A DNA stretch of 64,000 nucleotides from Thalia democratica. Its lineage: Eukaryota. The stretch covers positions 32,116,001 through 32,180,000 of the forward strand of contig OZ241831.1 in assembly GCA_965202585.1 (NCBI GenBank). Direction: 5' to 3'. This document shows positions 2,352-64,000 of the stretch, piece by piece. A program made the translations under genes and the position numbers. Every line of letters starts with the position of its first letter. Within the stretch, counting starts at the first letter, position 1. The notes below the pieces were generated by a model. It was not told the DNA's origin. It made no database searches and saw nothing but the letters and a program-made list of their open reading frames with translations.

Positions 2352-4261
2352 TGAAATTTTAGAAAATGGTAACCTTGAGAGTTTAGACATTTGTTTTCTG
2401 ATAGCAAGTTACTTTACAAAGTTTTTTCAATACTTTGTTTTGTTAACTTTAAAAAATTTAAATAAAATTTATCATTAAAAGTTATTAGTATTTCGTAATA
2501 CACTTTTTATACATGCTTAAAGCACTAAATTTTTTTGTAATGAAACAGTGTTGTACTTATATTTTTTTTACTTATAACTTAAAAAAACAACAACAAAAAT
2601 ACTTAGTATTGAGTTTACTACTTATATTTGTAGATAACTACAAAGATCTATAACTAAAATATTTGTGAAATAAGTCTGTATTTAATTAATAATATGAGTT
2701 TGGTTTTAGTTGCTATTTAAGGCGCTTAATGTTTTTAAAAAACTTTTGTTTACATACTTATTGATAAAATTATAATGAAAAAGATAAAAAAAATTGTGTG
2801 CAAAAGTTAATATTGTAACAAAAAACTTTTTTAGTAACAGGATCAAAATATAAATTGGAGTTATGGTTCAAACTCTATTTTGTTTTATAACTTTTATTCG
2901 ATGGTTTAGATCTTAATAGTTTTACTTACATACAGTTTTGCTTAACACAACAAAAACAAAATACAACATTTTTTTAGGTTTTGAGAAGTTATCGTATAAC
3001 CTTTCATATAAAATACAAGATACGAGTTAAAAAGGTGCAAAAAAGAAAACATTTGTTTACATGCAAAGTTTGTTTTACTTATAAAAACTTTTTTTTAATT
3101 ATCAAAATATACCTAAATATCGTGTTTGAAGTTCATAAAATAAATTACCAAATAATTAGTTGCTAATAAGTTTAAAAAATAATTACCTTAAAATAAGTCA
3201 GACAAAATAAAGGTAAATATAATAATAAAAAACTACTTTTATTATATATTCAAAATTAAATTATGTATAGTGTGTATTATGCTTTTATTTCTTTTGTAGT
3301 CATACTTTTCAGTTTATGTTAAACGTAAAACAAAAGAATTTGCCTTTAAAAAGTATGTATGGCTTATGTTTTATTAAAAGTGTGATTTTGCTCCTGTTTA
3401 ATTTAATTTCATTTGTATTGGACTTATAAGAGGTTTCCACTAAAGTTTTTATGCTGAAAAATTAACAATGTAAGTAAATACTTTAAAAATTTGAAACTGC
3501 AAACGTAAAGTTAAATTAAATTTATTAATACAATTTGTAATATGTCACTTAGGCAAAACTGAAACTTTAATCTCTGAAGAGAAGTAATTTCAAATGTAAA
3601 ACCTGCTAAAAACATTTTTACATCAATTACGCTAAAAATAGAAAGCATGAATTGAAAATAAATTTTAGTTTCAATTGAATTTAAGACTTCCTAAAATCTT
3701 AAATTAATCAATTTTATAACATTATTTATTTTTTATTTTTGAAGTCAAACTAAGTTTGTTTCTAGCAAAACAGACAAAATCTTAAATGCATAGCTGAAGC
3801 TAAATTAAGTTGTTATTTTTTTACTTAATCTAACATTTTTAGTTCGCAAATGCCTATATAAAAATCTATAATGAAGTTTTGACTTCACTCTATGTATTAA
3901 AAAAGGTAATAGTCTTAAAATAAGTGGTTTTTGATTGATTTAAAACTATAAAAAATATAACTTTTTGAACTGTCGATATTAAATATATTATTTACATTTA
4001 AAATTAAATATCATAAACAATACTTTTAAATTTTCAAAGTTAAGATTTAATTCTTAAAGTCGTTAACTTAAATCTTAGTTCTTAGATAACTCTCTTGAAT
4101 ATCTGGTTTCGAAAAAAAGTTTTTTTTTTTATTGTTTAGTAAATTTTGGTTTAAAAACTCCAAACTAATGCAAACTTATTATTTGAAACATTTATAAATT
4201 TATATAAATTTTTGTCTAAAAATTCAAGGTATTTATTATTCTAGTAGTATACTAAACATAC

Positions 4262-7200
4262 CAAATGATAAGCACTTTTTTAGTAATTAAATGAAGAAAA
4301 CTTTTCATTTAGACTAAATTGATCTTGAACATTTAAATTGAAAAAACTTTTTCCCGCTAACGCGTTTTTGTTTACTTCTAGAGTCTAGAATCTAGACTAA
4401 CATCGTTAAATTTAGCTGGTCTCAAATAACTTCCTACTTTTGCATTCAGTCGTTCTTGGCGGCTTTTTCTCACTTTATTCAGTACCTTTAGAGCTTGAAA
4501 AATACTTATATGTGTTTTCTACGCTTTTTTTTTAAGTACACAGAGAATGAATTTTGTAAGTATGCTATAAAATCACTAGTTTTTATTTACTTCGTACTTA
4601 ACCAAGCCCAAAAAATCTTAATTTTAAAGTAAATCAAGTTATCTAAATTTTATTTTTATTTTAGCAAAGTATTTTTTTTTTCTAACCATATAAACCAGTT
4701 TTAGATGTACACAACCAAACACATTGGTGATAAAGTTAATATTTTTCGGAACCCTATATTTTATAACAAAACACACAGTTTATAATTTTTAACTTTAGCA
4801 AATTTTACTTTTGAATTATAACTTCTACAATCCTTATATTATATTCTTTAGTACTTATTTACATTTTTATCGATTAATATCTACAAACTAATTCATTAAT
4901 AAACTTAGCCGTGTGAGATAAAACAAAATTAAAATTTTTAACAGTAAAGTATATAAGTCTTTGATAAAGATCTAAAACAAGTTAGAGTTTTTGAGGTAAA
5001 AAAATTAAGTTGGCTTTTTAGTTTGGTAACTGAACTACTAAAGTAAAACGTTTATAGAATTTTTATATGATTTTAGTTACGTTTTAAAAGATTATAGGGT
5101 GCTAAAACATTTGGTAAAAATTTTAACTTAAATTTATTTCCCATGTAAATGACAACTTTTTACTAATTCATTAAATCAATACACAACTTGTGAAATGTTA
5201 TAACGGTAATTTGAGAAGAACTAAATTGAAAATAATAAAAGCTTAAATTATCGATTGCTCTGCTCAAAACTATAGCAATATTTCTTCGAATCGTTTTTTT
5301 TTTCTATGAAATAACTTTGAACCGTCATGGCTTAACAGATTTATTTGATTTTACGAAAATGATAAATTACTTTAAATGCACTAACAGTTGTACTTTACCG
5401 AACGTAACAAAAAAATAATTTAATTTACAATATCGTCATATTTTGATCTAAACATACTTTAAGTAGTTATTTTGATAACAAATTTGTTTTTAAAAGTTAT
5501 CTAGAAATATAAAATATTGATCATTATCTCTAAGTTAAAGCATTTATAAAGTTACTCTTTCACTTGTATTTATACTTTCATAACTAAACTTAAGAATAGT
5601 TAGCATAAAAACAACACTTCTAAAGTGTTATTCAAACGAACTTAGATCCTTTCGTAGTCAAAAAAGGAAAAAAAAACAACAAAGATTAATTATTTTTGAT
5701 CATATATCTATTAACTACTGACTTATGTAAAATATTTAAAATACTTTTGATTTTAAGCAATCAATTTCAACTTTAAAACTAAGTAGAATGGTATGGTAAG
5801 TGTGACATACCTTACACTACAAAACACATAGTCCTAATATAACTAAAAAGAAATGAAACTAATGTTGAATAAGTTTTTTAATTCGTTTTAGCTTTGTAAT
5901 CGGACTTATCTCTTTTATACTTTAGTTAAAAACATTATAAACAAACTTAAAACAAAATTTTCCCGTAGTTTATACAACAAACCAAAACCTAATATATAAC
6001 AAACAACAATGATTAAATGAAAGTAAAGACTCGATATTTTTTGTCGAACTAAATACATAGAAAAATATAAAAACTTGAGTATAGCAAGTTGGTTCATTTG
6101 AAATATTATATAGTTTGAAACCAACATAATAGTCTCAACAACTTGACAATTTATAATCAAAAACTTACTTGTTTATGCAATTTTTAGTATATAATTGAAA
6201 AATGTAAAAAAATACTTTGAAAAATATTAATCGAATTTTGTTTATACTACTCAACTCAAATCTGTCAAAAAACTATTCAAGATATTCTTGTTATATAAGT
6301 AGTTGTTTAAAATAACTTAATAGTTGTTGAAAGAATAGTAGCTTTAATCCTGATGATAATACTTCTCATAATTGTTGACATCTTACTCAATTTTAGAAGT
6401 ATATTATGATAGTTACTATACGCATTTAGTTTAGAAGTACTTTTTATAAAGTTTGCAGCTTTTTATGTTTTAGGAAAAATTCAGAAAACTTTTATAGTAA
6501 CTCGCAGTAACAAATTTTATAATTTATAGTTCATTTGTTTAAACAGATTCACAAAACATCAAAATCATATGTGCAGTTCAAACTAGTTTGTATACAAATA
6601 AAAGGTCAAGCGCTACAGCTTATTAAGACGACCTTTCATTTATCACAATTTAAAATATATTATTTGCATATGTTGCATTGCAGTTTTATCATAAGTTCAC
6701 ATCAAAAAACTTTCAGACTTGTTATTTAAAAAAAATCATGTTATTTTAAGGTATCTTACACGTGATATCGTATGATTTTAAAATATATATATTTGAAAAA
6801 AGTTTAAATTAGTCATATCCTCAAATCAAGCTGTTATCACTAGATTCTGAAGTTTTATATTTAATTCAAGAAAAATCTATAAGTAGACAAAAGTATCGAT
6901 AATTTAAACACGCGAATAAAATATTCAAATCTCTGCGTGAATTACTTGTTGCCTGACTAATTTACATCTTGTCATATGTTTTGCAATTTAACTTAACTTC
7001 TTTACAAAGATACATTAGCTTTAATCAATTTTATTTCAGTTGTGATGCTAAATTACTTAACGGAACAAAAATTTAGAAGGCGACATAAAAAAAAACTATA
7101 TGTTAAAGTTTAAAAGCTTATTAAAACTTAAAAAAAATAGTTTAAAATACCTCTAAAATTAGTTTGACGAGTTATTCATGATAATCATGATAAAATTTTT

Positions 7201-15200: not shown

Positions 15201-15799
15201 AGTCTAAGTAAGTAAAAAAAAAAAATTTTAATCTGAAACTGCAAACGTTAAATTTAATTAAATTTCAAATACGTTTTGTAATATGTCACTAACGCAAAAC
15301 TGATTAAAAACCTTTTAAAACTTTAATCTCTGAAGAGAAGTATTTGCAAATGTTAAATGCACTAAAAAAAATTTTATATCAATTATGCTCTAAAATGAAA
15401 GCATGAAATACAGATTTTGGTTTCAATTTAATTTAAGATTTACTTAAATCTTAAGTTAATCAGTTTTGTAAAAATAAGTGTTTTTAATTTTGAAGTCAAG
15501 CTTAGTAAAACGTCAACAAATTTAGTTAAAAAACTGTTGATACTATATATATCATTTATATTCAAATGAAATAATAATAAACAAAATTTGGAAAGCTTCA
15601 AAATTGTAATTAATTTAATTCTTAAAGTCGTTAACTTAAATCTTAGTTATTAGATAAATATATATGTGTGGTTAATGAAAAAAAAAATTAAATTTTTTTT
15701 TGTATTTTTAAATACAAACTGTTTAAAAAATTTATAGTTTTTTATAAAAGTTTGATTAAAATCTAAGGTATCTATTATTTTAGTATTACACTAACTTAC

Positions 15800-16015
15800 C
15801 AAATGATAAGCACTTTTTGGGTAATTAAATGAAGAAAACTTGTCATTTAGTCTAAATTGATCTTGAACATCTAAATTGACAAAACTTGTTCCCGCTAACG
15901 CGTTTTTGTTTACTTCTAGACTAACATCGTTAAATTTGGCTGCTCCAAATCTCAAATAACTTCCTACTTTTGCATTCAAACGTTCTTGGCGATTTTTTCT
16001 CACTTTATTGAGCAC
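15800..16015 (-). CDS. RNF220-like: Intact phase 0-0 exon of RNF220-like copy 2
   Basis: tctaaag|GTG CTC AAT...CAT TTG|gtaagt; 216 nt; VLNKVRKNRQERLNAKVGSYLRFGAAKFNDVSLEVNK...AYHL. Confidence 0.75.
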
Positions 16016-16453
16016 CTTTAGAGTTTGAATGTGTTTTCTACGCTTTTTTTAATAAAAGAAGAGTTACTTCAATAGTATTATTATCAAATTTGTTTTGAAA
16101 ATGCCTGTTATATTTGTTTGTATTTAATTACGTTTTTTAGAGTCTAATCTGTAAACAAATTTCTCAAATTTCATATTTGATCATAAATTTTTTTAAATAA
16201 ATTTTAATATACAAAGTATATATAACCCAACAAAAAAAAAGTCGTTAACTAAATATGAAACTAGAATACATATGTATTCTTTCTAAGATATTTCTTATTA
16301 ACAAATCTTTATATGAACGTTTTTATATAGAAACAACTGAACTTGTTTAAACAACTTTGTCAAGATCTTTTAAAAAGGTATACTTTATTATTAGATTTAA
16401 AAAGCCACGAAAATATAAAACTTATAAAGCAAATAAAATTTCTTTACGTCTAC

Positions 16454-34963: not shown

Positions 34964-37900
34964 GAGAGAAGCTCTAAAACTAAATGGATATCACCACAAT
35001 TGAAGAAAGAAGTCTTAGTTAAAAGAAGAGCTACTTCGTTAGCAACTTGTACGGACCTTTAAAGACTTATAAAATAGCTTGTGGACCTCTAAAAGAAGAA
35101 ATACTTTGTAATAAGAATCCTTTCATTAAAAAATAGTTTCAACAATTTTTTTATCAATAGTTTTCGTTTCTCGTTCTACTTGTTATTCGTTGCTTACCTA
35201 AAGTTTTCCAAAGACAACCTACCACTGAATTGAGCAATAACTTTCTTTTATTTTTATTTATAAGTTGTGTATCTAACATCTTAAAATTATTTTTATGCTT
35301 TATAGAAAACTTAGTATTGTTGCATCACATAAACTTTATTTTTACAAGAATTTACTTGAAGTTAATTGCTGTATAAAAATGGGACTGTCAAACTAATAAG
35401 TCTGAATTGTTAAACAAAAATATACTGCCAACGATTTACTTTTTAGCTAAAAACTTTATATTTCATAACATTAAACAAAAACAAATTCCGGTAAAAACTT
35501 AAAATTAAGGTTCTCAAGTTATTAAATAGTAATTACTTGTGGTTTATTATAGCTTTTTTTATATCATTTTTGTTTTAAATGTTATTTTTTACTGATTATA
35601 ATACTTTTTTGATATTTTTGACACCAGATGACTTTTCTTATATAGTCCTGACCGCCAGTAGCTTTTACTGTCGAAAAAGTGACCAGGACTTATAAAAGGC
35701 TGCCTGCCCCTGGTATAAGACAAACCATATTTTGAATGTTTTAACGCGATGTAAAAAACAAAACAAAAGATAATGGTTTACAAAACATTAGTAATGAAAA
35801 CTAATGAACCTAATAAATAATAGAGAAATTTTAAAGCCTAATAACAGTATAGTTATTTTTTCGTAACAATGAAGCTTTCTTTGTACACGGTTGCGATTCT
35901 TTTAAGTTAAATAGACAGTCAGAGACGCAACAAAAACTCAAGCTTAACTTATTTCAAACAAGCCTGTGTTGACCTGAGTTAGCCCAAGTCAGCCTGAGTT
36001 TGTGACAACCCTTGATGTACTTCGGGCTACATGGGTCTCTAGCTTTATGTGAAATCGCCTTTGTAACAGGTTCGGCAGTTTCGACAGGAGCCAGATTAGC
36101 AGTAGCTTCGGGCCATCTTTATCTCTAGTTGCTACCTCGGTCTGCGACCGAGTACAAGAGGTGTAAGAGCTAATACCCTATACATTTTACTTATAATTTA
36201 AGTTTAAATATAGACTAACAAGTATCTATATGCTTTATTATACAATACAATCAAAGACACGATAAGAAAGGTTATTACTTGAGAAGGCTTCTTGCAGTTC
36301 ACAATTCTAGTTAGGCTGTAACAAGTGGTTGCTCGTACAGTTTACTGGTTCAGAAAGTAGGGACTTATACTTCCTCGTTGACACCGGATGTAGAGCGCGC
36401 GAGATAAAAAGATATAATATTCAAATAAAGAAAATTATAAATAATAGCAATAAGTTTATACCACCGAATGTATGGGCTTATGCGTGGAGCTTAATGTTCA
36501 AATTGATCCAAACTGGAAGTTGTTGTTGCTTGTCTGCTGCAGTATGCGTAGACTTATGAGTATGGCACGTTAACAACTCAAATCAAGTTGTACGCCCCGT
36601 CGACGTTGCTAAAGTAGGTATACAAAATGTATATAGAACAAGATATAAAAACTACGAAGTAATGAAGTTAAGTACAAAGTAAATGTTTCAGACAAACAAA
36701 TACTTGAATAAGAATGTTTTTCCGGAGATCATCTAGCTTTTTCAAGATGGCGACTTACACTCAGAGCGCCAAGAGAAGGTTTTTTCCAGGAGATCAGCTA
36801 TCTTTTCCAAGATGGCGGTTTACGCTTCGGACTGGAAACTGGCGTAGTGATGCTTCTTGTTAAGGTCGAAATCCAAATGTTCCGTTTTCTCGTTCGCTCG
36901 GCTGTTTATATACGTCCTTCTTACATAACATCACCTGGTCAAGACATGATTTCATGATGTAACATGCTGATTAAAGCATGAAACCGGCGTGATCGGTAGT
37001 TAATTCTACATGGCAAAAATGCGTCAACTAGCGGTTGTTACTATTTATTCGAAATAATGTTTTTAAAAACCAAAGTAGTGTTTTTATCATTTAAAGAATT
37101 ATTAGTAAAAGAAAAGGATTTAAATATGAAATTACTTATAAACTCGACTTTTGGACTATCGAAGCGAAAATAAAAAAATTTTCACGTCGATGTCCAACAC
37201 CCTGTTTGTACCAGAGAGAAGAGAAGCTCTAAAACTAAATGGATATCACCACAATTGAAGAAAGAAGTCTTAGTTAAAAGAAGAGCTACTTCGTTAGCAA
37301 CTTGTACGGACCTTTAAAGACTTATAAAATAGCTTGTGGACCTCTAAAAGAAGAAATACTTTGTAATAAGAATCCTTTCATTAAAAAATAGTTTCAACAA
37401 TTTTTTTATCAATAGTTTTCGTTTCTCGTTCTACTTGTTATTCGTTGCTTACCTAAAGTTTTCCAAAGACAACCTACCACTGAATTGAGCAATAACTTTC
37501 TTTTATTTTTATTTATAAGTTGTGTATCTAACATCTTAAAATTATTTTTATGCTTTATAGAAAACTTAGTATTGTTGCATCACATAAACTTTATTTTTAC
37601 AAGAATTTACTTGAAGTTAATTGCTGTATAAAAATGGGACTGTCAAACTAATAAGTCTGAATTGTTAAACAAAAATATACTGCCAACGATTTACTTTTTA
37701 GCTAAAAACTTTATATTTCATAACATTAAACAAAAACAAATTCCGGTAAAAACTTAAAATTAAGGTTCTCAAGTTATTAAATAGTAATTACTTGTGGTTT
37801 ATTATAGCTTTTTTTATATCATTTTTGTTTTAAATGTTATTTTTTACTGATTATAATACTTTTTTGATATTTTTGACACCAGATGACTTTTCTTATATAG

Positions 37901-43101: not shown

Positions 43102-44230
43102 AGAATATTTTTTTTACTATAATACTAAATAATTATTGTTATTATGTGACAAATCAGAATTCCGGTTGTTTAAACAATGTTTTAGATTCAAAACAAAGTT
43201 AGAAAACAATTAGAGACCTGAGTTACCCTGTGATCTTTATTTTATACATTTTTCCTGAACTTAATTAAAACTAACTACAACCGTAGATATTTTAAGCTAA
43301 TACTTCAAAAACTATAACTTTATCTCAATGAATAACTGACCTTTAACTAACCAAAAATTAACTCAACCTTTTCGATTCCAAAACTAAGTGTGTTTAACAA
43401 AAAGTATTAAAAGCTTATTCGTTTAAGTGTCTTTAACACATTTGTATGAGTGATTTTCTCCATCCAGAAATGAATAAATTGTTGTGCATTCATAGTTAAC
43501 TAATATTCTAAAGTAAATTAATAGTCATTTAAATTTTAATTGTGTTTGGATAAAACGTTATTAAGGGCATAGAAAAGGGGTAAATCACTTAATATATTAA
43601 TGTATATAGTTTTACATACATAAGGTGGCCACAGGTTTGGAAATTTTCTTTAGGTTTTCAAAATTTTGTTCACAGGTTTATCAGAATTTCTTCCAAGTTG
43701 TGAAAAGTATGATTTATATATTGTCTCAATTTGAAAATGTTTTGCAATCTTACTCCTAATCAAGACACTAATGGCATTCACTAATGGACTTAATTATGAG
43801 CATGATACAAAGTGTGTTGACACATCTTTTATCATAATTTGTTTAAATTATTTTTCTATAAATATACTATCTTCAAGTTGTTTTTAATATTTAAAAAAAA
43901 TTCCGAAAAATTTATGTAAATTTCTTTTAACTGAAGGAATAAAATATTTTTAGTGATCTTTTCTTTGGTCTTACTTTTTTTCTAAGTTTTAACATAAAAG
44001 TATATTCACTATTGAATTTTATATAATTTTTTAATTAAAAGTACGTTCCTTTTAATTATTTGTTTTAAGATTTACGTAAGTATTAATGGTTTTTTATTAG
44101 TATTTGGTAAAAAAAATCACTTATACTTAGCGGTTTGTATTTAATAAACAGATAAATATATATTCAATATATTGAATAAGGTAATTATTCTTAATATAAG
44201 AAAGACAGGGCTATATTTAGGTAAATTAAT

Positions 44231-45147
44231 ATGTCTGAATTGGAAATAAAAAGTATCATTGAAAACTGCAAAGTTAGTAAAGCAACAAAGGAAAGTTTGC
44301 TGCAACTAGGAAGAAAAAATTATGCAAAATTTCAATCAATGGAAAAAGAAATCCATAACTTGAAAAGTCAGTATGAAACTAAAATCAAGGAACTTGAAAT
44401 CAGTATCCAGAATACACAAAAAACTCATGAGGAGGTCTACAAGAAACAAACTACAAAAAAGTCTCTTGATTACAAAATCAGTTCACTAAATGAAAGTTTT
44501 ATGAAATTTAAAACAGAGTTCTGCAAAAAGTTTGATAATTTTGAAAAGAAACTTTCAATGTATGCAGAAGCATCAACAAACTCCTTTCAAAAACAACCAG
44601 ACTTTATTAGTAACATTGACAGTAAATTATCACTAGTAACACATCAAATAAATGCTGAAACTGAAAGGAAATTGAAAGAAAAAAAGCTTCAAATGTTATA
44701 GTATTTAATATTCCCAAAAACATTAGCAATACATCAGTTTATACGGTAGAAAATGCAAAAAATGACCTCAATAAAATACAAAGTTCTCTAGGTTCCAACA
44801 AGATAGCTGAAACTGAATTAAATACGTTATACCGTATTGGTAAATACAACTGAAATAAAACGAGACCAATAATTTTGAAACTACTGACACAATCTAGCAG
44901 AAAACGACTATTGAGTCTAAGAAACTTTAAAATACAGCATCTGGGAAAACAAATTAGTATCTACATTAATATTGATCGAACAAAATCAGAGATGGAACAT
45001 TTTAGAAAATTAAGATTTGAACTAAAACAAAAACAAGCAGAAGCTGAAAGTAAAAATTTGAACATAAGATACGCTATAAAACAAAACAAAATAGTTGAAA
45101 GTACTCAACTGCCCTTTCGGTTTAATGCCCAGGATCTCTGGGCCTAA
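44231..45147 (+). pseudogene. LINE ORF1 (frameshifted)
   Basis: ORFs 44231-44701 and 44875-45147 are joined by a frameshifted segment (KKASNVIVFNIP...RIGKYN*NKTRPIILKLL). Confidence 0.75.
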
Positions 45148-45200
45148 TAAGTCAAGCTTCAACACTGACATGCACCTTAAATCATCTAGTTTAATCTTTA

Positions 45201-47770
45201 ATGGTTCTAATACGAAGGCCTCAGGCACTGTTTTTTTCTAATAGTTTAACCTCTAGTAGAGATTTATTTTTAATTGTTTCATATACAAATATAAGATCTA
45301 TTTTAAACAAGATAAGCTTCATTGAATGTTATATGTGTACACAAAATTTATATTTATTTTTTTTAAGTGAAACATGGTTAAATTCAAATGTTATTGATTC
45401 AAATTTTTGTCCTCTAGGGTATAATATAATCCGTAATGACAGAATAGGCAGGGGAGGAGGCGTTGCTGTTGTATTTAAAAACTTTTTAAAATTAATTGAA
45501 GTAAAAACTAATTTTGTTTCATCTGATGGTTTGGAATTTTTATGTTTTGATTTGATTCTTAAAGGACTCAAATTGAGATTTTTATGTGTCTACATCCCTT
45601 CAAGTTCTTCTAAATCTCTAGCTGTTGTTTCAAACATGATCGACTTAATCAGAAACCTTATTCCAAAACAGTCTCCTTTTTACATTTTAGGTGACTTTAA
45701 TTTGCCAAATACAGACTGGAATATCCCAAGCACAACCTACAATGACTGTCACAAATGTTTTATTAAATTTTGTTCGGATAATCTCCTTACACAACTTATT
45801 GACTCACCTACCCATAAGAACGGTAATATCCTCGATTTACTGCTTTGTAATTATATGGCGTTAGATAGAGTTAAGTTTCATTTGGTTGATTCACCTTTAA
45901 CAAATATAAATAATCACATGTTATTTTGTTTGGGATAAGTGTTCACAAAAGTAAAAAAAACATCTCCTAAATCACTCTATCCAGATTTTCGTAGAGCAAA
46001 TTTTGAGAATATTAATAAATTTTTATCAAAAATAAATTGGAAAGTTCTTTTTCATAACTCAAAAAATCTACAAATGTTTTATGATAAATTTATCAAAACA
46101 ATAAACTTTTCAATCAAACAATTTGTGCCTTTAATTAAGCAAGACAGAAAAATGAAAACATATCCTTCTGATATAAAAAAGCTGTTAAGAGAAAAACTAA
46201 AACTCTACCAACAATGTAAGCTAGATAAGCAGATGATACAAAAATACAAAACTGTATCAAAAAAATATGAAAAAGCAGTGAAAGTGTTCAATATAGAACA
46301 TGAAAAACGTTTTTGCCAAAACACAAACTCAAAAACGTTCTACAGCTATGTAAAATCAAAGCTCAAGTTAACACCTTCTTTACCTGTATTAATTAATGAA
46401 AATAATTTTCCAATAATATCAGAACTTGATAAAGCCTCTTTTTTTAACAGGTCCTTTCAAAAGGTATTTATTAAAGATTGTGATGACAAAAATTTTTAAC
46501 TTGTTAGTAAAAAGTGTTTGGAAATGAAAAACTTCTTCATAAGCAATGATGAAATAATTAAGTCTGTTAATCATTTAAAAGATAAAATAATCAGAACGCC
46601 TAAAAACATTCCTTCATATTTTATTAAACGTACTATTTATTCCCTAATTCTTTCAATTTCACTAATTTTTAATTGTTCTATAGCTACATCCTCTGTACTA
46701 AACCAGTGGAAAGTCTCATATGTCATACCAGTGCACAAAAAAGGTAGTAAATACAACCCTTTAAAATACAGACCCATTTCTTTGACAAGCAGTTTTTGTA
46801 GAATTTTCGAACATATAATTTCTCTAAAAATACTTGATCATTTTTTTTTAGTAAGCTAATTTCACATAAACAGTTTGGTTTTCTACCTAATCGGTCATCT
46901 AGTTATCAACTGTTGAATTGCTTACACTCATGGTTGGTTTCATTTCTAAGCAATAAGTCAACTAAAGTTATTTACACAGACATTCAAAAGGTTTTTGACT
47001 CTGTATCCCATTTTAAACTAATAAAGACTTTAACTCAATACAAAATTCATAAAAGTTTAGTTAGCTGGTTCAAAGAGTTTCTTGAAAACAGAACCCAAAA
47101 AGTAGTTATTGGTAACAATTTTTCAGAGTTTTTACCTGTTTTCAGTGGAGTGCCTCAAGGAGGGGTTATTGGCCCACTTTTATTTATAATTTATATCAAT
47201 GATATAGCTTTAGAAGTAGATGTTGATAGCAACATAAATCTCTTTGCAGACAATACAAAAAATTTTAGCCATTCTAACACAATTCTACAAAAATCTTTTG
47301 ATAAAATTTATCATTGGCTAAAAGAAAGAAAACTAGTTTTAAATCCTAGTAAATGTCAGGTTGTAAACATTCAAAAAAATACATCTAGTATCACTTCTGA
47401 ATTTAGAATAAACAACATAAGGTTACCTTCAACTAAAGTGTTTAAAGATCTGGGAATTTTTATTGCTGAAAACCTAAAATGGAACCACCATATCAATTAC
47501 GTTTATCAAATTGCATCAACTATTTCTTTTCAAGTTTTAAAGAATTTTAAATCTACAGATATAAACATTCTAAAAAAAATTTATCTCGTTTACATTCGTC
47601 CTAAGTTAGAATACAACACACCAATTTGGTCTCCATACCTGAAGAAAGATATTAACCATCTTGAATCCATTCAAAGAAAATGTACAAGAATAGTCTTCAA
47701 CCGTTGCAACATTTCATACACATCTTATTTTGATAGACTCTCAATTCTTGGTATTAAGTCTTTAGACTAT
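45201..47770 (+). pseudogene. LINE ORF2: endonuclease plus reverse transcriptase, interrupted
   Basis: Four consecutive ORF pieces (45201, 45939, 46518, 46913). The catalytic YADD motif reads FADN. Confidence 0.92.
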
Positions 47771-50700
47771 TTAAACTGTTTTTATATAAAAATGACCCAT
47801 GTACGTTTTACTAAAATTATCATTACTCGGAAATGAAATCCCTTATATTTTTTTTATCGACTTTAAATCTTACTAAGAAATCAGAATGTAATTTAATGAA
47901 AGTTTTAATGATTTAAACTTACCAATACAGGCGCATTACTTTAATTCATTTTTCTAAAGACAGAATATAACACAAGACTACATACAAAATTAAGCTGAGT
48001 ATTTTAATAATTAAAAAACGAGTTGAAAGACATACTTAAAATGACTATTTAAAGCTTTAAAAAAAGTTGTTTTTTTTTATCAAATTGAATGTCTTAATAA
48101 ACGACGAAAGCTTTACAGAGCTTTGTTAGGTGTATTTAATTTAGGCAGTTTACTTTAAAGCTTTTTCTAGAGCGTTTTTGAAGATAAATTGTCAGGTACA
48201 AAATTATTGAGCTTAGGAATTTTTTTACACCCTCTTAGCAGTTTGAATATATTTACAAAAAAAAATTACAATTTAGTTTAAAAAATTTGTTTTTTAGTTT
48301 TCTTATAACCTTTCTAAACTAAACTGTCCTATAAAATGTTTGATTTTTCTTAGAAGTACGACCTAAAGTAACATTTTATAAGTAATTTAAAAATCAAAGT
48401 AGTTTAAAAATTACCTGGACAAGACTTTAAAAATTATCCGTGTTGTGCGACTCGATAACCGAAAGGCTCTTCGTTCACTATGGTTTTAGGACCAAATACT
48501 TTGAGCTTTTTTGTCTTTCAATAAAATATAATTTTACTAAAAAATTAAAGTTTTCAATTTTAAAGGCTGCTGTGCTGGCTTTTGATCAATTTTCAGCACC
48601 TAAATTTTCATAAAACTTGTAACATTACTACTACTAGAGCAAAAGTTATTAAGATTTAATTACTAGCTTTTCAGAAAAAACTTTCTATGATAATTTATTA
48701 ACTTCAAAGAATTTCATTTTCACAAACTACAAAGCAAAATTAATCTAAGCTGTATTTGAATAGTTTCTGTGTTTTTAGAGATCGTAGTTATGTTTTATCA
48801 AATATTTATTACTTAATTACGCGTATAAGTAGTAGAGTAAATTTTTAAACTGTAGTTAAATTTGAAATAACTAATAAAAATAAAAGTTAAAATATTATAA
48901 AAATACATTAAAAAATATTTTAAAAGATATTAAAAAAACCAACGCCATCAAACCGTACTGTTTTGATAGCGTTAGATAAAAAACATCACACCAAGTTGTT
49001 TTGAATCAAGTTTTTTTCTGAAAAGAGTTATTGCATTTGCTATTTGTAATATGGTTTTAGTTAAATTAAAAGGTTAAGTCAGGTAAGTGTCAATCTAGGA
49101 TGTTCTGTACAATAAACGGTAGACTCTAAAAACTAAAATGTATTTATAAAAAAAGACTGTATGTTTATAATTTTCTAACTTTTGCTTCCTCAAAAACAAA
49201 ACTGTTTGCACTAAAAGGCTTCAAAGATTTAAAGTGTAACATTTATTGAATTAAACTAAATAAATACTAAGTTACGATAATAAAGCGTTTGTAAGTGAAT
49301 TAAATAAAATCTAAAAACTCAAAACATCAAAATTTACTACCCGTATTCCGTACTGTCTTAAGTTTAGAACACAAAAATACTTACTTATTTAAGCTCACAA
49401 TTTCTAACAGCTGCTTTTTATAACTTTTAGTATCTAAAGCTTTGTACAAGTACAAGAAGTTTAATACGATGCATTTTTTTTATTAAAAAAAAAAGAAGTA
49501 ATACACATAGTTTGCTTGTATTTTGTATAAATTTTGAGCATGCTTTAATAGTTTCTCAATAGCAGAATGCAAGAACTGAATTTAAATACTTTTCACTTAG
49601 TAAGTAGCTCTTACTGATTAAGTAGACGGTACGGTACAGTAGTACGTTTTATAGAAAGCGACCTAGGATACAATATTTAAGCGCTTATTTTGTCGTCCAA
49701 CTAACTATACTAGTTTTATTATTCAAATTTTTAGGAAATCTAAACATAAACTCTAAATTAATGTTTTAAACTTTATATTGATTTATGTTTTAATTTTTTG
49801 ATAAAAATTAGTATTACAACAGTTTTTATATGAACTTTATACATATTAAATACTTGATAAAATATTTAAATTACTCACTAAGAATAACTTAAAAAATTTT
49901 GGGCATACTCGGTTGTGAAAAGTATTCTTAAACAAACAAAAAGGTATTCGTGGTGTGCGACTTAATAACCGATAATATAACAACCGGTATAGAACCAAAT
50001 ATTTTAAATAGTTTTTTTCTAATTTCAATAAACTATTTACTTGCATTTTTTTTAAAACCGGAGAATATGGCTTTTTCACTAACGCGACCAGCAAAAAATG
50101 TGTAGAATTACAATTCTGATGCAACATTGTATTACAAGTTTGAATAATACTACCATGCTACAGTATTACATAATTCAGTAAAGAATTGTTGGAATTTGAA
50201 AAGAAGATTGTTGCATTTATTCACAAAGAATTTTTTATGCTGATACTTCAGGTTTTGTGATAGTTATATTTATATATGATGAAAAAGTTTTTTTTAGATG
50301 GTGAAAAACATTAAACTCTAATTCTTCATAATCTATTACAACATTATATGTAGTAGATTTTTGCACACTTGGCAGTGTGTTTTTTAAATTTTAAATTTAA
50401 TTTTTTTTTGTAGTTTCATAGAAATGACCTACATTTCTAACATATTATTTTAGTTACATATTTTAATTTAGACACTTATTTTTTCATATATAAGCCTTTT
50501 TTATCCTCTTTAGAACATGTATGCTAGAAATAATAAATAAAATTTCAACTATTTTATTTCTTATCACCACAAGATTACTACAATTTTTATGTATTTTTTG
50601 CATTTAAACTATTACAGAGTTGTCAAAAAACCTGTAAACCCAGAATAAGCTGAAATTTTAGAAATTCTGAAAAAAAATCTGGAATTTTGAACAAAATCAC

Positions 50701-50953: not shown

Positions 50954-51375
50954 CAGGGTTGCCACTTTACCTGGAAACCTTGAAGAACCTGGAATTTGAA
51001 AATTTAGGCAAAAATAACCTGGAAAAACTTAGAATTTGAGAAATTTTGAAAAAAACCTGGAAAAACCTGGAATTTTGATCAAAAAACCTGGAATTTTTAT
51101 TAATTTTAACATTTTCAGTACTAAAATATCAGTTTGACACAAAAAATCTATCATATAAATATGATTTTTTTTGTCATCATCAAAAAAGTTTTACTAAAAA
51201 ACACTTTTAAAGTAACTTTACAGCATCTTTTAAATGCTTTTGTACTATTTAATACAGTTTCTTTTATAGAAATTAACATATAACTAAAAATAGACCCAAA
51301 ATATTTTCTTTTAAAAACCTGGAAGAAATTTGGAAAACCTGGAAAATTTTTTTGAAAAAACGAGTGGCAACCCTG
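50954..51375 (+). mobile_element. MITE of the CAGGGTTGCCAC family
   Basis: TIRs cagggttgccact / agtggcaaccctg with many internal aaaacctggaa motifs. TSD not clean in this copy. Confidence 0.85.
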
Positions 51376-51604
51376 TAATTTTGATGTACTGTAGTCAATA
51401 TAATATATTGTATTGATATAATCAGTTTATATAGTAAAATGAAAGCAATTAAATGTTTAAGTTTTTTTTAATGATAAATAAGTTTTATTTTATTTTCTAT
51501 GTGTTTATAACATTTGATTTTTAACCATAAAATGTTGTTGAAATAGACCTGGAATAAAATAAAAATTCAGTTCGATATTGGTGCAACATCATGCTAGGTA
51601 ATTA

Positions 51605-59860: not shown

Positions 59861-61702
59861 ATATTCAAAAAATACTTGCTTTAACTTATCAAGGTTTTTC
59901 GAAATATTCATATTAAGATTAAATTCTAGCTTTTTTATCAAACTTGTTCAATTACTAAAATAAGCAGTTTCTAAAGAAATTCTTGAGTAATAAAATAGAT
60001 AGCAAAAAATTTATAAACAGAAAAAAATATGAAAAAATAAATGTATTTTGCCATTAAAGCATATTCATTATGTAAAGAAATTACTTTTTACTTAAACTGC
60101 TTTTTACTACTACCAGGATCCACCTTACACTAAAAATTACAAAAATTTTACAATATTTAAAAACTATTATTAACACAAGATTTTACTTTTTTGGCCATGT
60201 ATAATACTATTTTTTAATTGTATGCGAAGTAAAAAAAATCAATTAGTTTGTTACAAATGATATCAGAATGTCAGCATATCTCAAAACAGTATAAAATTTT
60301 TGAAATTCTCAGGACTACTCAGGACGACTATAAACTAAAAAAGGAAACTGAGGATGACTTAGGCTAGTCTTATTTTTTTAATTCATGATGGTTTTTAGAT
60401 TTCTGTTAATCTCAGGCCAGTTTATTGTTTAGATTTTAAATGAAATTTAAATAAATTAGTTACAATATATTGATATTTTGTAACCAATTTTGTTGAAGAA
60501 CTTGATTTTTATTGATTTTAAAAAGTTAAAAATAGTTTTTAGGGTTTCTAAAACTCAGGATGACTTGAGACAGTTTTTTTTTACTCAAAGTGTGATCCTG
60601 AAATTTTAAGCATTGAAAATAATTTAAATTAAACTTTTCTTCTTATCTGTTTACTAAATATAAATACTTATATCTTAAAATTAATAACTCTATTTGTTTT
60701 GTGTATTTTTGTACAGTATAATATGTTGATTTATCTGTATTTAAATTTATAGGTCTTCTATTTTTTAATGACTTTAAAAAAAATGATCTTTTTTAAAGTC
60801 ATTAAAAAGACTAAGATGAGTACCACTATTGCTCTTAGTACAAGCACAATCCACAAAAGCTTAAGTAGACTTGAAAGGGACATGTCTGATAAAATAGTTT
60901 GAAATTGAAAATAAATCAACATGTACAAAAAAGTCCCAATTATTTACATATTTCGGCCAATATGACAACTAAAAATAATAGCCTACATAGTTTTTTCTAG
61001 TTATATGGCCAATTGGGGGCTGTTCAACAAGTGTCAGAAAATTGTCTAAATTGGTGCATGTCAGTCTAAAATTCCACAAGTTTGTCTTTGAACCCTGAGT
61101 TGTCATTTGATAAATTAAATTGTTTCACAGCTATTACTAAGTATTACATTTTAGTTTTAAAAGAATAATCCTGGAAAGTTTTGGATGAAATTAAAAAATG
61201 TTATAGGTATATATTTTTTAATCTAAGATGATGTAAAATATTAGAGAATACAGTTTTTCATAGTTCTTAAAATGATTTCCTGAAGTAGTTTTTCATGTTA
61301 TAGTATTTTAAATCATGATTTTTAATTGGTGCCTGTTTATTTAATACTTATTCAGCTTAATATTGAATCTTTTATTTAAAAATACCTTGTATTTGTAGAA
61401 ATATTTATGAGGTATTGATAAAAGAAAAACTTTATTTAAAGTCTGAACACATATTATAAACAAAATTAATTTGATTTATAAGTACTGTAATTAAGTTGGG
61501 TTGTTGTAAGTTTTTTATAATTTTTATATTTTATTGTATTTATGATGCTACTTTGTGCTTGCAAAAAACCAATAAAAGTTTTGCGATATTGTCTTACAAT
61601 TTCGTTTACAAAAAAAATGTGTAAAAGTGTTTGTTTAACTTTTATTCGAAATATTTGAAAGTCCTAGAAAAAAGACAAATTTAAAAATGTTGTAACTGTA
61701 TT

Positions 61703-62035
61703 CAGGGTTACTACTTACCTGGAATTCTAAAAACACCTGTAATTTGACAATTAAGGCAAAAAAGAACTGGAATTTTAACAATTTTCAAGTGTTCACTAGT
61801 AAAATTTCGATTTGACTCAAAAATTCTATCATATAAATAAATTTTTTTTGTTATCATCAAAATTTTTTTTTATTGAAAAACATATTAAAAGTAGCTTTAC
61901 AGTATCTTTTCAATGTTTTTATACTATTTAACTTAATTTAAAATAAAAATAGACCCAAAAATGTGTACTTTAAAAAAACTTGGAAGAATTTTGTAAAACC
62001 TGGAATTAAAAAAAAAAAAACGAGTGGTAACCCTG
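61703..62035 (+). mobile_element. MITE of the CAGGGTTGCCAC family, 6-bp TSD tgtatt, 127 bp upstream of the QARS ATG
   Basis: tgtatt|cagggttactac ... gtggtaaccctg|tgtatt. Confidence 0.88.
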
Positions 62036-62162
62036 TGTATTGTTGAAAGGTATTTTTTTTATAACTATTTAGTCTCCAAAGACTGACTGTATTCTATGAT
62101 TTTAAAGTTTTATCAAAAATTTAATACCTAATTGTTTGTCACAGATATTTTTTTATATAATC

Positions 62163-64000
62163 ATGACTGCAGACGTAAAGAAACTATTTGAAAATGCTGG
62201 CCTCACTGCTCAAAAAGCAGAAGAGACTATGAAGAACAAAGTTTTATCAGCTGCTTTTGAAAAGGCTATCAAAAATGCTGAGTCAATTTCTAAAGTTGAC
62301 AAGTCTGTTGGTAATTTTCTGTACCAGATCTCTAGCAAGGTCAAAAATTTTGAGCATTTGGACTTTTTAAGCGGGTGCATTGCCAGAAAGGAGCTGAGAA
62401 CTGATGTTCAGCTCAATTTTGCCATCATGTACCTCAAGTCCAAGCCACAAATGCCTGTTGACAAACCTGCTTTTGATAAAGAGTGCGGTGTGGGAATCAA
62501 TGTCACTCCTGAGCAAATAGAGACTGAATGCGAGAAACTTGTGAAGAAGTTTGAAAAGGAGCTGAAAGAGCAGAGGTACAAGCTGTTAGGTAAGTTGCTG
62601 GGCGAAGCAAGGAAGGATCCACTGCTCAAGTTTGCTGATGGTAGGAACGTCAAGCACGAAATTGAAGTTCAAATTCTTGACATGATTGGTGAGAAAACAC
62701 AAGAAGACTTGAACAAGAACAAGAAGAAAAAAGAAAAGCCCGCTGCCGAGTCCAAGTCAAAAGCTGAACCAGAAGTGGAGACGTTGAGCTTGATGGAGCA
62801 GCTGAGAGGAGCCGCGTTGAAGTTCCACAAGCCTGGTGAGAACTACACCACCGACGGGTATGTGACAACAAAAAACACCATGAAGCACATGGAAGAACAT
62901 TTGAAGTTCACCAAGGGTCAGGTCAGGACCAGGTTTCCGCCCGAGCCAAACGGAATTTTGCACATTGGCCACGCTAAGGCAATCAACTTCAATTTCGGAT
63001 ACGCCAAAGCTAATGATGGGATCTGTTATCTGAGGTATGATGACACGAACCCTGAAAAGGAAGAAGAAAAGTTTTTCACTGGCATTTTAGACATGGTTCG
63101 CTGGCTGGGTTATGAGCCTTACAAGATAACAGCTGCCTCTGACAACTTTGGAAAGCTCTACCAGCTGGCAATCAAGTTGATCAAAGAAGACCTGGCCTAC
63201 ATTTGCCACCAGGAACAGAGTGAAATTCAAGGTCACGATCCTGCAGATTCCCCATGGAGAAACAGACCAATTGAAGAGTCTCTGCAGCTGTTCGAAGACA
63301 TGAAAAATGGCAAGATAGACGAAGGAAAGGCAACTCTGAGAATGAAGCACGTCATGGAAGACGGCAAGAAAGATCCTGTCGCCTACAGAATAAAGTTTGC
63401 TGCCCACCATCGCACAGGAAACGATTGGTGCATCTACCCAACTTACGACTTCACTCACTGCCTGTGCGACAGCATTGAGGACATCAGCCACTCCCTGTGC
63501 ACCAAAGAGTTTCAGGCGAGGAGGTCCAGCTACTATTGGCTGTGCAACGCCGTGGACATCTACTGCCCCGTGCAGTGGGAGTACGGTAGACTGAACTTGC
63601 ACTACACTGTGGTTTCAAAGAGGAAGATCGCCAAGCTGATAGAAAAGGGAATTGTCAGCGACTGGGACGATCCGAGGCTGTTCACCCTGTCTGCTTTGAG
63701 GCGCAGGGGTTTCCCCGCCGAAGGAATAAACAATTTCTGCGCTCAGGTTGGCGTCACCGGCAACCAGGTGGTGATAGAGCCAAGCATGCTGGAACACTGC
63801 ATCCACACCACCTTGAACACCACCGCAAAAAGACGCATGGTGGTCAAAGACCCGCTTAAGGTAAACATCACCAACTTCAAGGACTACTCTGGCGATTCGG
63901 TTGAAGTTTTTGACTTCCCCGCGGAAAAAACAGGCGAAAAACGATCGGTTTCAGTCACCGACACGATCTACATCGAGCAAGACGATTTCATGCTGAAGCC
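62163..64000 (+). CDS. QARS: Glutaminyl-tRNA synthetase (eukaryotic, metazoan type), 3' partial, no intron over 612 codons
   Basis: Manual translation from ATG 62163 is open to the window end: N-terminal domain MTADVKKLFENAGLT...ECGVGINVTPEQI, then LKFHKPGENY, VRTRFPPEPNGILHIGHAKAINFNFG (HIGH), RYDDTNPEKE, WCIYPTYDFTHCLCDSIE, QWEYGRLNL...VVSKRKI (KMSKS-equivalent) and WDDPRLFTLSALRRRG. Confidence 0.97.
   Translation, partial: MTADVKKLFENAGLTAQKAEETMKNKVLSAAFEKAIKNAESISKVDKSVGNFLYQISSKVKNFEHLDFLSGCIARKELRTDVQLNFAIMYLKSKPQMPVDKPAFDKECGVGINVTPEQIETECEKLVKKFEKELKEQRYKLLGKLLGEARKDPLLKFADGRNVKHEIEVQILDMIGEKTQEDLNKNKKKKEKPAAESKSKAEPEVETLSLMEQLRGAALKFHKPGENYTTDGYVTTKNTMKHMEEHLKFTKGQVRTRFPPEPNGILHIGHAKAINFNFGYAKANDGICYLRYDDTNPEKEEEKFFTGILDMVRWLGYEPYKITAASDNFGKLYQLAIKLIKEDLAYICHQEQSEIQGHDPADSPWRNRPIEESLQLFEDMKNGKIDEGKATLRMKHVMEDGKKDPVAYRIKFAAHHRTGNDWCIYPTYDFTHCLCDSIEDISHSLCTKEFQARRSSYYWLCNAVDIYCPVQWEYGRLNLHYTVVSKRKIAKLIEKGIVSDWDDPRLFTLSALRRRGFPAEGINNFCAQVGVTGNQVVIEPSMLEHCIHTTLNTTAKRRMVVKDPLKVNITNFKDYSGDSVEVFDFPAEKTGEKRSVSVTDTIYIEQDDFMLK

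Follow-up and report, generated by a model that had tools for sequence, protein, structure and literature searches.

The 64,000-nucleotide stretch of Thalia democratica DNA analysed here (contig OZ241831.1, positions 32,116,001 to 32,180,000 of the forward strand, or C7:32116001-32180000 in the assembly G000; hereafter the window) ends within a long, uninterrupted and GC-rich open reading frame (ORF) for glutaminyl-tRNA synthetase (QARS), which begins at position 62163. Very probably, this ORF is the native, sole and functional cytosolic QARS gene of its host, in which the coding introns were lost long ago by way of an mRNA, and in which GC content at third codon positions (GC3) rose later. 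The gene is functionally ordinary. It has two striking features: its GC-rich codons follow a genome-wide habit of the host's housekeeping genes, and its loss of introns is old, of a known kind and recurrent in tunicates. A preliminary description of the window had offered three explanations for the combination, namely a retrogene, a horizontal transfer from another animal and a chimeric join with contaminant DNA.

Coding sequence and predicted product

Translation of positions 62163-64000 (+ strand) gave 612 codons free of stops, and a protein search against all 1833 contigs of the 802-Mb assembly showed that these are the first part of a single-exon coding sequence of 766 codons, with 463 nt more lying past the end of the window. 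The full ORF extends from the ATG at 62163, which is position 1501 of the locus sequence L001, to a TGA at L001:3799-3801 (L001:1501-3801 in all), placing the stop codon at G000:C7:32180463; the reading frame around it is open for 785 codons. Pfam searches identified the catalytic domain PF00749 (362 bits, residues 253-552), the appended N-terminal domains R1 and R2 (PF04558, 152 bits; PF04557, 69 bits) and, in the full ORF, an anticodon-binding domain in two parts (PF03950, 65.6 bits; PF20974, 72 bits). Motif searches of the translation located the HIGH signature of the class I catalytic site at residues 267-270 (62961-62972, + strand), within the PF00749 match, and SKRK, the QARS version of the KMSKS loop, at residues 485-488 (63615-63626, + strand). 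The motif LKFHKPGENY, described earlier as animal-type, was also found. Over its full length the protein is 64% identical to that of Clavelina, 63% to Ciona, 59% to Styela and 57-59% to vertebrates, these being the best named matches. The predicted product is a complete eukaryote-type cytosolic glutaminyl-tRNA synthetase of class Ic. Its identity to named QARS proteins, its position in the tree and its low identity to paralogues (both below) indicate that it is orthologous to animal QARS and not to the glutamyl-tRNA synthetase (GluRS) paralogues. It shares with animal cytosolic QARS1 the same five-domain architecture (R1 and R2, a Rossmann catalytic domain bearing HIGH together with a KMSKS-type loop, and a pair of anticodon-binding barrels), and differs in having a coding sequence without introns, versus 13 introns in Ciona, and a GC3 of 0.63 in a genome of ~23% GC.

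The composition of the ORF stands out sharply from its surroundings, as the preliminary description had noted for its uninterrupted 612 codons. The full ORF has a GC content of 0.486 (GC1/2/3 = 0.49/0.34/0.63) versus 0.21-0.24 in the flanks, and the last two kilobases of the window reach 0.40 and 0.50 versus 0.19-0.26 for most of the remaining kilobases. GC3 climbs along the gene, the first sixth having 0.42 and the last 0.78. Within ~100 nt 3′ of the stop codon, GC is down to 0.22. The low GC3 reported for a comparison exon elsewhere in the window was confirmed (0.24 at ~15794-16048, minus strand).

A single locus with the codon habits of its host

The protein search returned exactly one QARS locus in the assembly. 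The PF00749 family as a whole has three loci, these being the window ORF, a multi-exon gene on contig C2, whose matched exon segments are 43-52% identical to QARS (presumably the GluRS part of EPRS), and a multi-exon gene on contig C4, ~26% identical to QARS and taken to be the mitochondrial EARS2. Thus, the second, intron-containing QARS for which a search had been suggested was absent from the assembly, protein and PF00749 searches of which found no intron-bearing parent, and because there is no such parent the ORF must do the essential job itself.

We compared QARS with about 15 other host genes. Its relative synonymous codon usage correlated with that of host KARS and KRS2 at r 0.57-0.66, and with that of its own orthologues in related species at r ~0.1. 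Among intron-free genes, two KARS-like genes (583 and 574 aa) have a GC3 of 0.57 and 0.53, a second, lysyl-tRNA synthetase (LysRS)-like pair (475 aa) 0.51-0.53, and a mitochondrial-type AspRS-like gene (608 aa) 0.25. Among genes with introns, exon GC3 is 0.40-0.67 in the intron-rich class Ia synthetases and 0.38-0.46 in the two class Ic paralogues, and two HSP70 genes, listed in this group, have values of 0.68 and 0.73. GC3 varies widely among host genes. The QARS value of 0.63 belongs to the upper, housekeeping part of the spread and falls inside the housekeeping range of 0.38-0.73. A GC-rich, intron-free QARS is therefore not unusual for this host. The preliminary description had set the gene apart from its host by these same two features; since housekeeping GC3 is commonly high, several host genes are intron-free and QARS groups with the host lineage, that distinction largely falls away.

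These values agree with the published genome of Thalia democratica (790.7 Mb), whose GC content of 25.3% is the lowest among tunicates and whose coding sequences lie almost 17 points above the genome (PMC13746493). The window region, at 22-25% GC, is close to the published figure and has the same contrast with GC-rich coding sequence. The published values are genome-wide averages; here, by contrast, the rise is dated in one gene lineage and stops at the borders of the coding sequence. Single-exon genes are also common in another salp, Salpa thompsoni, where they make up about a fifth of the total (5633 of 26,610; PMC10686999).

Two more general patterns were considered for these host genes and rejected. 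A tie between missing introns and high GC3 fails in both directions, as intron-rich class Ia exons reach 0.67 and the intron-free AspRS-like gene has only 0.25. Likewise, a 5′ to 3′ gradient in GC3 is not a rule, being present in QARS and one HSP70 gene and reversed in the KARS-like genes. Separately, a large HSP70-family exon (L058, G000:C8:34073137-34074717) rises in GC3 from 0.38 to 0.93 over 507 codons, more steeply than QARS.

The host LysRS genes are themselves worth recording. Two intron-free genes of cytosolic type (L046 and L047, on G000:C10 at 23.40 and 22.83 Mb) are 85% identical to each other. Copies of a shorter, 475-aa LysRS-like type (L048 on C99 and L049 on C7 at 50.9 Mb) are 96% identical to each other and 46% identical to the first type, and a further gene (L050, C2 at 24.96 Mb) is a diverged relative of this shorter type. 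In other animals, cytosolic and mitochondrial LysRS forms are made by alternative splicing; in this host, separate genes could have replaced it.

Age of the intron loss and of the GC3 rise

The order of the two changes was read from related QARS sequences. A metagenomic DNA scaffold (L012) encoding a protein 85% identical to the window QARS carries an unbroken QARS with a GC3 of only 0.32 and an upstream flank of 0.22 GC. Synonymous sites between the two genes are saturated (proportion of synonymous differences, pS, 0.79), which indicates that the intron-free state is old. When third-position changes were polarised with two further relatives, 56 of 57 on the window branch ran from A/T to G/C, while 10 of 19 on the other branch ran from G/C to A/T. 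These polarised changes argue that GC richness arose within this lineage after the introns had been lost, and was not imported. Since GC enrichment reaches no further than the start and stop codons, we consider selection, acting on codons or on the coding mRNA, a likelier cause of the rise than biased gene conversion or another regional process.

Intron history of QARS in tunicates

Intron states were read from five other tunicate genomic loci; four relatives with 62-72% identity (L014, L089, L093 and L094, from Logan, JGI and a metatranscriptome) may be transcripts and stand outside this comparison. The QARS gene of Ciona intestinalis extends over 6.5 kb, has 13 introns and gave 14 exon matches; that of Branchiostoma gave at least 17. 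Of the 10 Ciona junctions that were mapped exactly, three (alignment columns 279, 341 and 778) have the position and the phase of a Branchiostoma junction, and in both genes the first exon encodes residues 1-37. The coincidence of junctions indicates that the Ciona introns are at least partly ancestral. By contrast with Ciona, QARS is uninterrupted in a chromosome-scale record of Styela clava (L095) and in L092 and L096, two large genomic contigs of ascidians from the Clavelina group.

The window QARS falls, in a maximum-likelihood tree of 29 rows (LG+C20+F+G4), within a clade of metagenome, metatranscriptome and sequencing-run sequences (support 100/100). This clade is united with the Ciona pair and the Clavelina group, again at 100/100, with the Styela group and all non-tunicates outside. 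On this tree the protein appears just where that of a pelagic tunicate (thaliacean) is expected, and so groups with its host lineage, a point that the preliminary description had left to a phylogeny. A tree in which all non-Ciona tunicates were forced into one clade was rejected (delta lnL 66, p-AU 4.9e-6; approximately unbiased (AU) test), which argues for at least two independent complete losses of introns and against one old retrocopy retained in some lineages only.

Our tentative history, to which we give slightly less than even chances in its full detail, is that coding introns were lost independently in at least two tunicate lineages, one leading to the stolidobranch Styela and the other to the window's pelagic clade together with the aplousobranch-like ascidians, that Ciona kept the ancestral state, and that the window lineage alone then went through a fast, nearly one-way synonymous sweep from AT to GC that stopped at the borders of the coding sequence.

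Two histories with a single event at the base of the tunicates were weighed against it. In the first, the QARS of the tunicate ancestor was already intron-free and Ciona regained 13 introns later; counting lineages alone this is the most parsimonious solution, as Styela (L095), L092, L096 and the window clade all lack introns. It nevertheless appears unlikely, because the three of 10 Ciona junctions that match Branchiostoma compare with ~0.04 expected by chance (a rough estimate from 10 x 10 junctions over ~2300 nt), and because the first exon, residues 1-37, is common to the two; we know of no process by which introns are regained at ancestral sites. In the second, less likely still, one ancient retrocopy would have arisen in the tunicate ancestor alongside its parent, with Ciona keeping the parent and all other lineages the retrocopy. 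A single event would then account for the many intron-free lineages. This history predicts one non-Ciona clade, however, whereas the unconstrained tree unites Ciona, the Clavelina group and the window clade at full support and leaves Styela outside, and the AU test rejected the constrained alternative.

Origin and integrity of the locus

The locus was further examined with contigs from four sequencing runs aligned to L001, namely X1, X4 (carrying a second organism label, organism B), X5 (a marine metagenome) and X6 (a metatranscriptome). Contigs assembled from DNA bridge the 5′ junction between ORF and flank in X4 (L001 1361-1763) and X5 (1418-2309), and the 3′ junction in X1 (L001 3706-4232), X4 (3709-4297) and X5 (2386-4035). 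In addition, a TARA Oceans metagenome scaffold (L011) whose protein is 98% identical has the same unbroken QARS ORF and shares the AT-rich 3′ flank with the window over ~410 nt. Metatranscriptome contigs of X6 cover L001 1509-3819 with gaps between them, and among the contigs aligned to L001 none from X6 lay on the unique flanks of QARS. Between the window gene and L011, the ratio of nonsynonymous to synonymous divergence (dN/dS) is 0.086 at a dS of 0.09. The QARS locus is real, transcribed and under purifying selection.

Acquisition of the gene from another animal with GC-richer codon usage, as had been proposed, would explain the strong contrast in GC between ORF and flanks and the lack of introns in the coding part. 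We nevertheless consider such a transfer highly improbable: QARS is nested among tunicates at the position expected of the host, its codon usage resembles the host's, its nearest relatives are GC3-poor (0.32 and 0.44), so that GC richness arose within the lineage, and the genome holds no other QARS to do the essential job. An assembly chimera or a contaminant fused to host DNA, suggested by the abrupt change in composition at both ends of the ORF, has a negligible probability given that contigs from another organism label, a marine metagenome and a TARA scaffold with the same flank independently cross the junctions, and that the locus lies ~32 Mb inside a contig of 67.7 Mb. To the limit of these data, both horizontal transfer and misassembly are excluded.

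Mechanism of intron loss

We suggest the following course of events. The ancestral tunicate QARS would have had many introns, 13 of which are still present in Ciona, some of them at amphioxus positions. In the host lineage, every coding intron would have been removed through a spliced-mRNA intermediate, as the clean removal of each of them suggests, either because a cDNA recombined with QARS at its own site or because a retroposed copy outlived its parent. Removal would predate the split from the relative with the 85% identical protein. Afterwards, synonymous sites in the window lineage would have changed strongly towards G/C at the expense of A/T, a shift also undergone by other housekeeping genes of the host, leaving a GC-rich coding block between AT-rich untranslated regions (UTRs) and spacers. 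In this account, the involvement of reverse transcriptase and the reason why GC3 rose are inferences.

The retrogene explanation of the preliminary description thus survives in part. None of the 13 coding introns of Ciona is left and the genome lacks an intron-bearing parent, which rules against a recent extra copy and leaves either an old replacement or an in-place, cDNA-mediated loss. Two known kinds of event provide models. Orphan retrogenes, or retrogene replacements, are exemplified by amphioxus SYCP1 (PMC5803294), with which the window gene has in common a single-exon coding sequence that is the sole copy of an otherwise multi-exon essential gene whose parent is absent. A further likeness is the short non-coding 5′ exon and intron that probably lie upstream of the window QARS coding sequence (see below). 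Such an upstream exon and intron are common in functional retrogenes. The difference is that the window QARS shows no poly(A) remnant and no convincing target-site duplication. The event is old, synonymous sites being saturated against an intron-free relative. The second model is mRNA-mediated intron loss in place, by reverse transcriptase (PMC3652778). Here the likenesses are that all coding introns are cleanly gone from a highly expressed housekeeping gene, that the genome contains long interspersed nuclear elements (LINEs) with reverse transcriptase, and that the only QARS intron that probably remains lies at the extreme 5′ end. Loss under the reverse-transcriptase model is biased towards the 3′ end, which a lone 5′-end intron fits. 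As an instance of this process, the removal of 13 or more introns at once would be extreme.

A LINE close to QARS, mentioned in the preliminary description, is indeed present at 44.2-47.8 kb, 14-18 kb upstream of the gene. It is degraded (44225-47833, + strand), being broken into five or six open frames, and has matches to the AP-endonuclease families PF14529 and PF03372 and the reverse transcriptase family PF00078. It shows that the genome carries elements encoding reverse transcriptase, and is context and not evidence for the mechanism.

Several points weigh against the account given here. There is no poly(A) remnant after the AATAAA ~180 nt past the QARS stop codon, although decay makes this expected if the event is old, and no convincing direct repeat flanks the gene, where we saw only short AT-rich repeats of the kind expected by chance. 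Since these hallmarks of retroposition are not visible, it is only the clean loss of all coding introns that speaks for the mRNA route. Comparison of six-frame pieces of the Ciona QARS flanks with 74 kb of host DNA found no shared neighbours, so that loss in place and relocation are not separated; microsynteny is generally poor in tunicates. The host comparison set is small. The RNA evidence and most of the bridging DNA evidence consist of assembled contigs, derived from close relatives or from environmental samples; raw reads of the sequenced individual are not among them. Finally, the annotated ATG is spliced out in the sole RNA contig that reaches the 5′ end, which makes it uncertain where the main mRNA truly starts.

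The 5′ end of the gene

The preliminary description had called the gene intronless. This stands for the coding part, with its 766 unbroken codons, and not for the gene as a whole, which probably has a 123-nt intron at its 5′ end, seen in one RNA contig. The contig, from the metatranscriptome, joins L001 position 1387 to 1511 (window 62049 to 62173), bypassing L001 1459-1508, and thereby removes a GT..AG stretch at 62050-62172 (+ strand) that contains the annotated ATG (62163-62165). The contig has a depth of 294 and only 25 matching letters on its short side, and the joint was called as 1385>1509, with the cut shifted by +2. The same sample also yielded a DNA contig that runs colinearly through 62050-62172. 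Upstream of the joint lies the 3′ end of a short non-coding 5′ exon (62025-62049, + strand, at least 25 nt), ending in GAAAG before the GT and containing an in-frame TAA at 62028-62030.

With the annotated ATG removed and an in-frame TAA in the 5′ exon, the spliced form could start only at a downstream ATG. The first in frame encodes Met23, which is present only in the closest relatives of the window gene and is Leu in more distant ones. At the protein level, residues 1-22 of the window gene are conserved in its 85% identical relative, which has no AG at the 62172 acceptor. Another AG, located ~20 nt ahead of the ATG at 62141-62142, is conserved in position in the same relative and may be an alternative or trans-splice acceptor that keeps the ATG. 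The most economical reading, to which we attach moderate weight, is a 5′-UTR intron with two acceptors, of which that at 62141-62142 gives the productive mRNA and the contig caught the other. As a side reading, an alternative 3′ splice site that removes the start codon may give rise to an isoform starting at Met23. The region also contains a short out-of-frame ORF with its ATG at 62194, the TGA of which overlaps the in-frame Met23 codon. The 16-mer of the Ciona-type spliced leader has no occurrence within the 64-kb window. A scan for bacterial-type promoters and terminators gave fewer sites than shuffled sequences and was set aside, as its models are not applicable to an animal gene.

Repeats and other open frames in the window

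A copy of a very high-copy dispersed repeat (61660-62036, + strand) abuts the 5′ exon of QARS and was recognised from contig depth (L001 bins 973-1458). A second copy, ~80% alike, lies at ~50995-51384. The repeat reaches a summed contig depth of ~1.3 million in the DNA runs and is also found in RNA contigs. It is ~380 nt long and AT-rich, with recurring CCTGGAA motifs and the end ...ACGAGTGG(T/C)AACCCTGT.

Between 36311 and 41464, a pair of open frames of ~82 codons (GC 0.38-0.44) is present in three copies set 2255 nt apart (starts at 36311, 38566 and 40821), and looks like a long-period tandem triplication. Neither frame has a Pfam match. Tandem Repeats Finder detected nothing across 35-43 kb, its longest period of 500 being below the 2255-nt spacing. 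At the opposite end of the window from QARS, an open frame of 390 codons (3-1172, + strand) has a GC of 0.37 and a GC3 of 0.33, with sub-threshold Pfam matches only.

Implications

A GC-rich, intron-free ORF surrounded by AT-rich DNA does not indicate foreign origin in this genome, and the codon usage of the host should be checked first. That an essential, single-copy synthetase has repeatedly been turned into a single-exon gene in tunicates is a modest evolutionary point. The finding that the GC3 rise came later than the intron loss, and is confined to codons, bears on the question of selection versus biased gene conversion in AT-rich animal genomes. If the history proposed here is true, tunicate synthetases would provide natural replicates for asking why housekeeping genes repeatedly become single-exon, and would also offer a test of selection for GC-rich codons in extremely AT-rich genomes.

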